From Thalia democratica (taxonomy: Eukaryota): a stretch of 64,000 bases of DNA. Position 1 is the first letter of the stretch, and the number at the start of each line of letters is the position of its first letter. This document shows, piece by piece, positions 52,363-53,893 of the stretch. Below the pieces are notes generated by a model that ran no database searches, was not told the DNA's origin, and saw nothing but the letters and a program-made list of their open reading frames with translations. The position numbers were made by a program, and so were the translations under genes. The DNA lies in NCBI GenBank assembly GCA_965202585.1, contig OZ241831.1, positions 12,524,001 to 12,588,000 of the forward strand. The letters are read 5' to 3'.

Positions 52363-53893
52363 TTAAGCTTCCTCTTCGCCTTCCTCTTCTTCGTCGAACT
52401 CTCCCTCTTCTTCAGCCGTGGCGTCCTGGTATTGCTGGTACTCGCTCACCAGATCGTTCATGTTGCTCTCTGCTTCGGTGAACTCCATTTCGTCCATACC
52501 CTCTCCCGTGTACCAATGCAAGAAAGCCTTCCTCCTGAACATGGCAGTAAACTGCTCTGAAATGCGCTTGAAAAGCTCCTGTAATGTTTTTATTTTAGGT
52601 AGATAATTTGTCATTTGATCAGTTATATTTATTACCTCATAACTCAAGAAGCTTAATAAAAAATCATATTATATAAGTTTAGGTAAAATTGATTTAGGTT
52701 TAAGTAAGTTTCTTTAAAATAAATTAAAAACAATCGACTTAAAAACTTATTATTTCTGTTTTACAAACTTGGATTGCAGTGCTGTTTCCAATGAAGGTAG
52801 CAGACATCTTCAGTCCTCTTGGAGGAATATCACAAACGGCAGTCTTTACATTGTTGGGGATCCATTCTACAAAGTAGCTGCTGTTTTTGTTCTGGATGTT
52901 AAGCATCTGCTCGTCAACCTCCTTCATTGACATTCTGCCTCTGAAGTAGCAACCCACTGTGAGGTACCTGCCATGTCTTGGGTCGCAAGCGCACATCATG
53001 TTCTTGGCATCAAACATTTGCTGGGTGAGTTCAGGTACTGTCAGGGCGCGGTACTGTTGGGAACCACGGCTGGTGAGTGGAGCAAAACCGGGAATGAAGA
53101 AGTGTAGACGCGGGAAAGGAACCATGTTGACAGCAAGTTTCCTCAAATCTGAGTTAAGCTGACCTGGGAATCGCAAACATGTGGTCACTCCGGAAAGAGT
53201 GGCAGATACAAGATGATTCAAATCTCCATATGTTGGGGTGGTAAGTTTTAGTGTTCTGAAGCAAATATCATACAATGCCTCATTGTCAAAGCAGAATGAT
53301 TTGTCTGTATTTTCTACAAGTTGATGGACTGAAAGTGTGGCATTATAAGGTTCGACTACAACATCAGATACTTTTGGAGATGGGATAACGCTGAAGGTGT
53401 TCATCATTCTGTCAGGGTATTCTTCTCTGATTTTTCCAATAAGAAGTGTTCCCATTCCAGATCCGGTACCTCCTCCAAGAGAATGTGTGAGTTGAAATCC
53501 CTGTAGACAATCACAGCTTTCTGCCTCTTTGCGGACGACATCAAGCACAGAATCTATAAGTTCGGCTCCTTCTGTGTAATGACCTTTGGCCCAATTGTTT
53601 CCTGCGCCACTCTGACCAAATACAAAGTTATCTGGTCTGAAAATCTGTCCAAAGGGTCCTGATCTTACTGAGTCCATTGTACCTGGTTCAAGATCAACTA
53701 GTACAGCGCGAGGCACGTATTTTCCACCAGTTGCCTCGTTGTAGTAGACATTGATCCTTTCTAACTGGAGATCACTGTCACCATGGTATGTTCCAGTTGG
53801 GTCAACACCATGTTCATCTGAGATGACTTCCCAGAACTTGGCACCAACTTGGTTACCACATTGTCCAGTTTGCATATGAAGAATTTCACGCAT
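52363..53893 (-). CDS. TUBB: Beta-tubulin, 446 aa, two coding exons (53893-52769, 52578-52363)
   Basis: MREI N-terminus, GGGTGSG signature, continuous beta-tubulin sequence. A 190-nt GT-AG intron (gtttgt...ttacag) splits STAIQ|ELFKR. Acidic tail [16 protein letters not shown]. Confidence 0.98.

Follow-up and report, generated by a model that had tools for sequence, protein, structure and literature searches.

A probable beta-tubulin isotype pair with a re-lined colchicine/benzimidazole pocket in the salp Thalia democratica

A stretch of 64,000 nucleotides from Thalia democratica (contig OZ241831.1, positions 12,524,001 to 12,588,000), which we refer to as the window, carries a beta-tubulin gene with unusual residues in the pocket that binds colchicine and benzimidazoles. 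This raises the question of whether the gene is a working isotype whose pocket has been rebuilt and, if so, why. Few residues of animal beta-tubulin vary as little as E198 and the alanines of strand S8, and the colchicine site, a major drug target, is not known to have a physiological ligand. A rebuilt pocket beside an unaltered sister gene is a clean natural experiment on the role of the pocket and on the residues that set ligand affinity, and it can reveal whether animals rely on target-site insensitivity of tubulin as they do on resistant sodium pumps and channels. Should a toxin be involved, the gene points to an unknown chemical ecology in salp food webs; if none is, it means that tubulin still functions with its pocket filled. 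On the whole we lean towards the view that the window gene and a sister copy are a functional, expressed isotype pair with a re-lined colchicine/benzimidazole pocket, the rest of the protein being canonical, including the C-terminal tail.

The window gene and its paralogs

Reading of the open reading frame and its translation gives an intact two-exon gene of 446 amino acids on the minus strand, at window positions 53893-52363, with the following parts:

53894..53932, minus strand: putative splice acceptor (AG at 53932-53931) and 37-nt 5' UTR, placed by analogy with the C8 copy and its Tara relatives
52769..53893, minus strand: exon 1, codons 1-375, ATG at 53893-53891, supported by the open reading frame, Pfam and alignment with solved beta-tubulins
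52579..52768, minus strand: the sole intron, GT..AG, phase 0, between codons 375 and 376, splice sites read in the sequence
52363..52578, minus strand: exon 2, codons 376-446 and the TAA stop, with an acidic tail that is the same as in the canonical paralog C2a

The gene is a genuine member of the beta-tubulin family (tubulin/FtsZ superfamily). Exon 1 matches the Pfam domains Tubulin (PF00091, 8.8e-63) and Tubulin_C (PF03953, 5.2e-39), and its residues 1-375 align with residues 1-375 of solved beta chains with no gaps (E = 1e-252), so that sequential residue numbering is valid. The hallmarks of a beta-tubulin, namely the GGGTGSG nucleotide-binding signature, the MREI N-terminus and the acidic C-terminal tail, can be read in the translation; T7/H8 has K and not the alpha-type E, and the genome's own alpha- and gamma-tubulin genes reach only 30-43% identity. 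An exact look-up of the exon-1 product returned no record. The window has 28% G+C, in an assembly of 802 Mb.

Five beta-tubulin genes were found in the genome, two of which have the unusual pocket:

Window 53893-52363, minus strand: the window gene, C7; two exons; KSFCF at codons 198-202, S248, GCY at 314-316; C301 is unique to this copy
C8:63709920: the C8 copy; intronless; KSFCF, S248, GCY; 98% amino acid and 84% nucleotide identity to C7
C2:50266190-50271194: C2a; six exons, with two alternative first exons; ETYCI, A248, AAM; canonical
C2, in tandem with C2a: C2b and C2c; four exons each; ETYCI, A248, AAM; about 39 residues from C2a

As canonical-pocket paralogs are present in the same genome as the rebuilt-pocket genes, the suggestion of the initial annotation that the window gene represents an isotype is borne out. 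Its nearest relative is the genome's own C2a, with which it has 95.5% protein identity and an identical C-terminal tail. All three C2 genes have an intron exactly where the window gene has its own, between codons 375 and 376, which implies that the variant lineage derived from an intron-bearing gene of the beta-tubulin family; C7 lost its other introns, and C8 all of them.

The canonical-pocket genes form a tandem cluster at C2:50266190-50287555 (loci L043-L046). The two alternative first exons of C2a (50270583-50270639 and 50271138-50271194) lie 555 bp apart and differ only at residue 9 (T/A), which suggests that alternative promoters may be used. C2b and C2c are younger duplicates (dS 0.5-0.67) with a faster rate of evolution (dN/dS 0.08-0.10), and the tail of C2b differs. 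Among the C8 gene and its relatives on Tara contigs, conservation starts right after an 'acag' that precedes the ATG by about 60 nt, a pattern that would fit a (trans-)splice acceptor with a conserved 5' UTR behind it, and a comparable 'gcag' is found 37 nt upstream of the ATG of the window gene.

Residues of the colchicine/benzimidazole pocket

The residues that the initial annotation had read from the codons (K198-S199-F200-C201-F202, S248 and G314-C315-Y316) were all re-derived from the sequence. Together with five changes beyond that reading, all of them in both variant copies (S153G, I163M, T178V, M233L and M267I), they are located as follows, whereas A301C is found in the window copy only:

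53288..53302, minus strand: codons 198-202, K-S-F-C-F (usual E-T-Y/F-C-I); published strand S6, the deep 'zone 3' of the pocket; K198 AAA 53302-53300, S199 TCA, F200 TTC, C201 TGC, F202 TTT 53290-53288
53150..53152, minus strand: codon 248, Ser, TCA (usual Ala); T7 loop, within 4 Å of colchicine (PMC4882049 Table 2)
52946..52954, minus strand: codons 314-316, G-C-Y (usual A-A-V/I/M); published strand S8, where this stretch is the floor of the main colchicine zone (PMC4882049 Table 2); G314 GGT 52954-52952, C315 TGC, Y316 TAC 52948-52946
53195..53197, minus strand: codon 233, Leu (usual Met); helix H7, in C8 too; probable second-shell repacking, its nearness to the pocket being judged from the listed neighbours G235 and V236 (PMC4882049)
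53093..53095, minus strand: codon 267, Ile (usual Met); probable second shell, adjoining the pocket residue F266, which comes within 4 Å after MD simulation (PMC4882049 Table 4)
53360..53437, minus strand: three changes common to both variant copies that are rare by residue frequency; G153 53437-53435, M163 53407-53405, V178 53362-53360

How unusual these residues are was judged from 219 representatives of beta-tubulin clusters, with denominators that vary by position. The usual states in this sample are E198 in 211/219, T199 in 183, Y or F at 200 in 106 and 103, I202 in 192, A248 in 180/212, A314 in 173/188, A315 in 154/189, and I, V, M or L at 316 in 185/188. Among the same 219, K198 occurs in 3, G314 in 4, Y316 in at most 3, and G153 and V178 in 2 each. 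The residues at 153, 163 and 178, which we place in the nucleotide domain, on H4, S5 and T5, are each found in 1-2% of the sampled beta-tubulins, and could suggest a wider retuning of the protein. Of the sequences retrieved, only the tunicate C8 protein has more than 5 of the 15 signature residues, and a check of the motif at 314-316 in 7 of the 219 representatives verified GCY in the tunicate protein alone; an apparent Y316 in a butterfly (Papilio) protein was rejected as an alignment artefact. Homolog searches could not separate carriers of the motif, since the database is clustered at 90% identity and the variant falls within a canonical cluster of 15,420 members. Back-translated K198 motifs gave 0 matches in JGI metagenome contigs, a result that speaks for rarity there and not for absence.

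The claim that the changes fall in one drug pocket stands in part. The window protein differs from C2a at 20 of 446 residues (5, 7, 16, 113, 153, 163, 170, 178, 198, 199, 200, 202, 233, 248, 267, 301, 314, 315, 316 and 333), and 17 of the 20 differences are found in the C8 copy as well. We took as the pocket a set of 26 published residues, made up of the 20 beta residues, numbered sequentially, that come within 4 Å of DAMA-colchicine, among them 248 and 313-316 (PMC4882049 Table 2), and the 6 benzimidazole-resistance residues 50, 134, 165, 167, 198 and 200 (PMC8267433). Six of the 20 differences (198, 200, 248, 314, 315 and 316) are in this set where 1.2 are expected (hypergeometric P = 5.9e-4), and the 17 changes common to both copies are enriched as well (P = 2.1e-4). 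The pocket-lining role assigned earlier to 198, 200, 248, 314 and 316 agrees with the published contact and resistance lists (PMC4882049, PMC8267433). Along the sequence, eight pairs of changes are at most two residues apart, against 1.8 expected (permutation P = 4e-4), so by both of these structure-free tests the substitutions are not randomly placed. On the other hand, about 12-14 of the 20 changes are off the contact lists, and for this reason 'one drug pocket' covers only part of the picture.

V236, C239 and T351, at which other isotypes with altered colchicine sites have changed, are kept in the window protein. Among the resistance positions, F167 and F200 are in the benzimidazole-sensitive state and K198 is resistance-type; in nematodes and fungi alike, F200 is the sensitive state. 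The description of E198K as a known benzimidazole-resistance change is correct, as it is documented in fungi, where resistance is high-level (PMC8267433). It has also been selected in Giardia, with cross-resistance to podophyllotoxin, but docking in Giardia did not predict weaker binding of albendazole to K198 (PMC8267433), so that weaker binding need not be what makes E198K resistant in physical terms. E198 is buried and forms with Y200 the hydrogen-bond centre for nocodazole, plinabulin and PAC, and E198G, E198Q and E198D abolish binding of PAC, a ligand of the deep site (bioRxiv 10.1101/2021.05.09.443293). S248 is the state in colchicine-resistant Leishmania, kinetoplastids and Acanthamoeba (PMC3780476).

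From the residues we suggest that the pocket is both re-lined and closed. K198 would replace the buried glutamate to which benzimidazoles, nocodazole and plinabulin are anchored, and F200 would take away the tyrosine or hydroxyl partner of residue 198. F202, S248 and Y316 would bring bulk and polarity into the pocket, with a net gain over the six pocket-facing side chains of about 50 cubic angstroms by standard residue volumes, while G314 could leave space for the ring of Y316, and L233 and I267 could repack the second shell behind the pocket. A pocket refilled by K198, F200, F202, S248 and Y316 should accept such ligands poorly, and we consider it probable that dimers with the variant isotype bind colchicine-site and benzimidazole-type ligands poorly.

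Tempo of change and expression

Compared with the beta-tubulin of a hemichordate (Ptychodera), C2a has 5 differences in 430 core residues and the window gene has 23. A Tajima relative-rate test with Ptychodera as outgroup assigns 18 changes to the window lineage alone and 0 to C2a alone (binomial p = 7.6e-6), and other outgroups gave similar results. Three of the changes (A315C, M/I316Y and T178V) require steps of two or three nucleotides. We conclude from these substitution counts that the changes arose as a single burst on the branch leading to both variant copies. Between C7 and C8, 177 codons differ synonymously and 9 non-synonymously (dS 1.44, dN/dS 0.018), and C8-type genes on Tara contigs, at dS 0.27, show no amino acid difference in 430 codons (dN 0). 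These divergence estimates show that after the burst the variant was held by very strong purifying selection, with C2a retained alongside. Recent gene conversion between C7 and C8 was considered as the source of the pocket that they have in common and was rejected, as their nucleotide identity varies little from one end of the gene to the other (0.77-0.87) and nowhere rises in a local stretch.

Both variant copies are seen as RNA. A JGI contig (L038) contains the full coding sequence of C8 and ends in at least 35 A at a point where the genome continues differently, and since this poly(A) is absent from the genome we regard the contig as a polyadenylated C8 mRNA. For the window gene, 45-63% of the sampled 31-mers (window 52300-53950), none of which occurs in the four paralogs, are found in contigs of RNA runs, metatranscriptomic and oligo-dT, from at least three studies. 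The run with the highest share has 0.83 of the words of the window gene, the level that an intron-less transcript would give, provided that this run is one of RNA. The initial annotation named lack of expression as a refutation, and the RNA runs speak against it.

Contigs from Tara Oceans and other marine metagenomes encode the exact C8 protein, which marks the animal as pelagic. On the Tara contigs the C8-type gene is found in two lineages (L033, L036 and L037 in one, L031 and L035 in the other), with about 98.6% and about 95% nucleotide identity to the Thalia genome and with the same protein, and these lineages probably represent two closely related species or populations.

Known systems and possible causes of the change

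Animal beta-tubulin isotypes with divergent colchicine sites are already known, but the tunicate variant was not found described in our literature search; the full-text search returned no mention of the peptide motif, and nothing was found on pocket variation in tunicate tubulins. Vertebrate class VI (TUBB1, the blood-cell isotype) is, like the tunicate variant, an animal isotype with a colchicine site unlike that of the main isotypes. Both have Y200F and A315C, and in TUBB1 the modelled cavity is smaller and colchicine is bound more weakly (PMC9194530 supplement, PMC10216767). However, TUBB1 is divergent throughout, with about 84% identity to TUBB2B, whereas the tunicate variant has 95.5% identity to its own canonical paralog. 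TUBB1 furthermore keeps E198, has C239S, T351V and I236, and binds several benzimidazoles better, whereas the tunicate variant has K198, F202, S248, G314 and Y316. As it retains V236, C239 and T351, and as its nearest relative is C2a, the tunicate variant is not an ortholog of class VI. Vertebrate class III is likewise an isotype with pocket changes, including one at 315, and with reduced colchicine binding (PMC4882049), but its changes are C239S, A315T and T351V, and it is unchanged at 198, 200, 202, 248, 314 and 316.

The E198K alleles of fungi, Giardia and nematodes are the identical change at the same buried position and in the same VENTD-x-x-F-C context (PMC8267433, PMC11879688). They are, however, recent, drug-selected single substitutions within populations, whereas in the tunicate K198 is a fixed feature of two copies that are separated by a dS of about 1.4, together with at least 7 other pocket changes. 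The colchicine-insensitive tubulins of kinetoplastids, Acanthamoeba, plants and fungi combine A248S with changes at 314 and 316 on strand S8, as in the tunicate, and this combination is credited with making the cavity smaller or more polar (PMC3780476, PMC10216767). Those are general tubulins that keep E198 and have S314 and L or V at 316, unlike the tunicate variant, which is one isotype class in a chordate and has G314 and Y316. An aphid protein (Macrosiphum euphorbiae, P0159) has a natural K198 with F200 and S248, as in the tunicate variant, but it keeps I202, has A-S-I at 314-316 and is generally divergent (87% identity), and a related aphid protein has E198.

What selected for the new pocket is less clear. 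Protection against a natural antimitotic is a possible cause, which we put forward tentatively. In its more specific form, which we regard as somewhat more doubtful still, the variant would confer target-site insensitivity to a natural colchicine-site antimitotic, from the open-ocean food web or made by an associated microbe, and would be used in exposed cells. The choice of residues fits such a defence, as does the resistant-plus-sensitive paralog pattern known from other target-site insensitivities in animals. In the Thalia genome a paralog with a resistance-type residue stands beside a canonical one, and pocket sites are enriched among its changes, but many of the changes are off the contact lists. 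Colchicine-site poisons act substoichiometrically, and since three canonical genes are kept, resistance would need cells that express the variant copies only. A pelagic colchicine-site toxin was looked for in the literature and none was found.

Alternatively, the pocket could have been rebuilt to tune the behaviour of microtubules, drug insensitivity being a by-product, and we hold this to be about as likely as toxin defence. The colchicine cavity sits among helix H7, loop T7 and strand S8, which shift when tubulin switches from curved to straight, and salp cell cycles are very fast; a filled pocket could alter stability or dynamics, for example for these cell cycles or for a particular cell type. 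The rare changes outside the pocket that both copies have in common (G153, M163 and, in the T5 loop, V178), all in the nucleotide domain, would be in line with such tuning, and so would the retention of the canonical isotypes, which is expected under division of labour. It is known that sequence changes can modify the effects of drugs through the intrinsic stability of microtubules (PMC10216767), and the literature search that yielded no pelagic colchicine-site toxin also weighs on this side. Against it, the variant and the canonical copy have the same surface and C-terminal tail, whereas isotypes with a specialised function usually differ there, and the changes fall on ligand-contact and resistance residues of two separate zones of the pocket.

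Improbable, in our view, is a compensated and near-neutral drift, in which an odd substitution was fixed after duplication while the canonical copy covered for it, and buried changes then compensated for it, so that the new packing is as constrained as the old one without adaptive meaning. Several changes are indeed buried and adjacent (198/200/202, 314/316, 233 and 267) and include swaps of size, such as A314G beside M316Y, and the pattern of burst and then stasis is compatible with drift. Beta-tubulin is, however, nearly immutable, C2a having changed at 5 of 430 residues over a deep deuterostome divergence, and 18 changes on one branch, several of them multi-step, would hardly accumulate by way of deleterious intermediates unless positive selection acted.

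That the copies are decaying or non-functional, C8 being a processed retrocopy, or that they are an artefact of assembly or contamination, is very improbable: C8 is intronless and the window copy is down to one intron, but a dead copy is excluded by the intact frames, the dN/dS of about 0.02 between the copies and of 0 against sister lineages, the polyadenylated C8 mRNA, the RNA runs with the window gene, the intron position in common with the C2 genes and the occurrence of the C8-type gene in independent ocean metagenomes.

The genome offers some further observations, separate from the question of the beta-tubulin pocket. Two alpha-tubulin paralogs (L010, C2:30080895-30081542, and L011, C4:48727574-48728221) have QIATAVVEPYN in the T5 loop, that is, Ala instead of the usual Ser178, whereas the alpha copies L006 and L012 retain STAV; alpha S178 is among the alpha-side residues within 4 Å of colchicine (PMC4882049). 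The mitochondrial COX1 gene (contig C1833) reads GFGN, FGHPEVY and GGGDP only if AGA/AGG are translated as Gly and TGA as Trp, as in the tunicate code, and its close matches in the protein collection were ocean sequences at 92%. A look for cellulose synthase with PF03552 gave no match, which says little where a gene is split into exons. COX1-like fragments with many stops occur on nuclear contigs (C4:56842736-56945724 and C757:30096-33638; L040-L042), and these are probably nuclear copies of mitochondrial DNA. Finally, the window itself has a tandem duplicate on the minus strand, at 32249-33274 and 40181-41194, consisting of near-identical open reading frames of 341 and 337 amino acids, the products of which are acidic and end in a C-terminal CCCVLQ.
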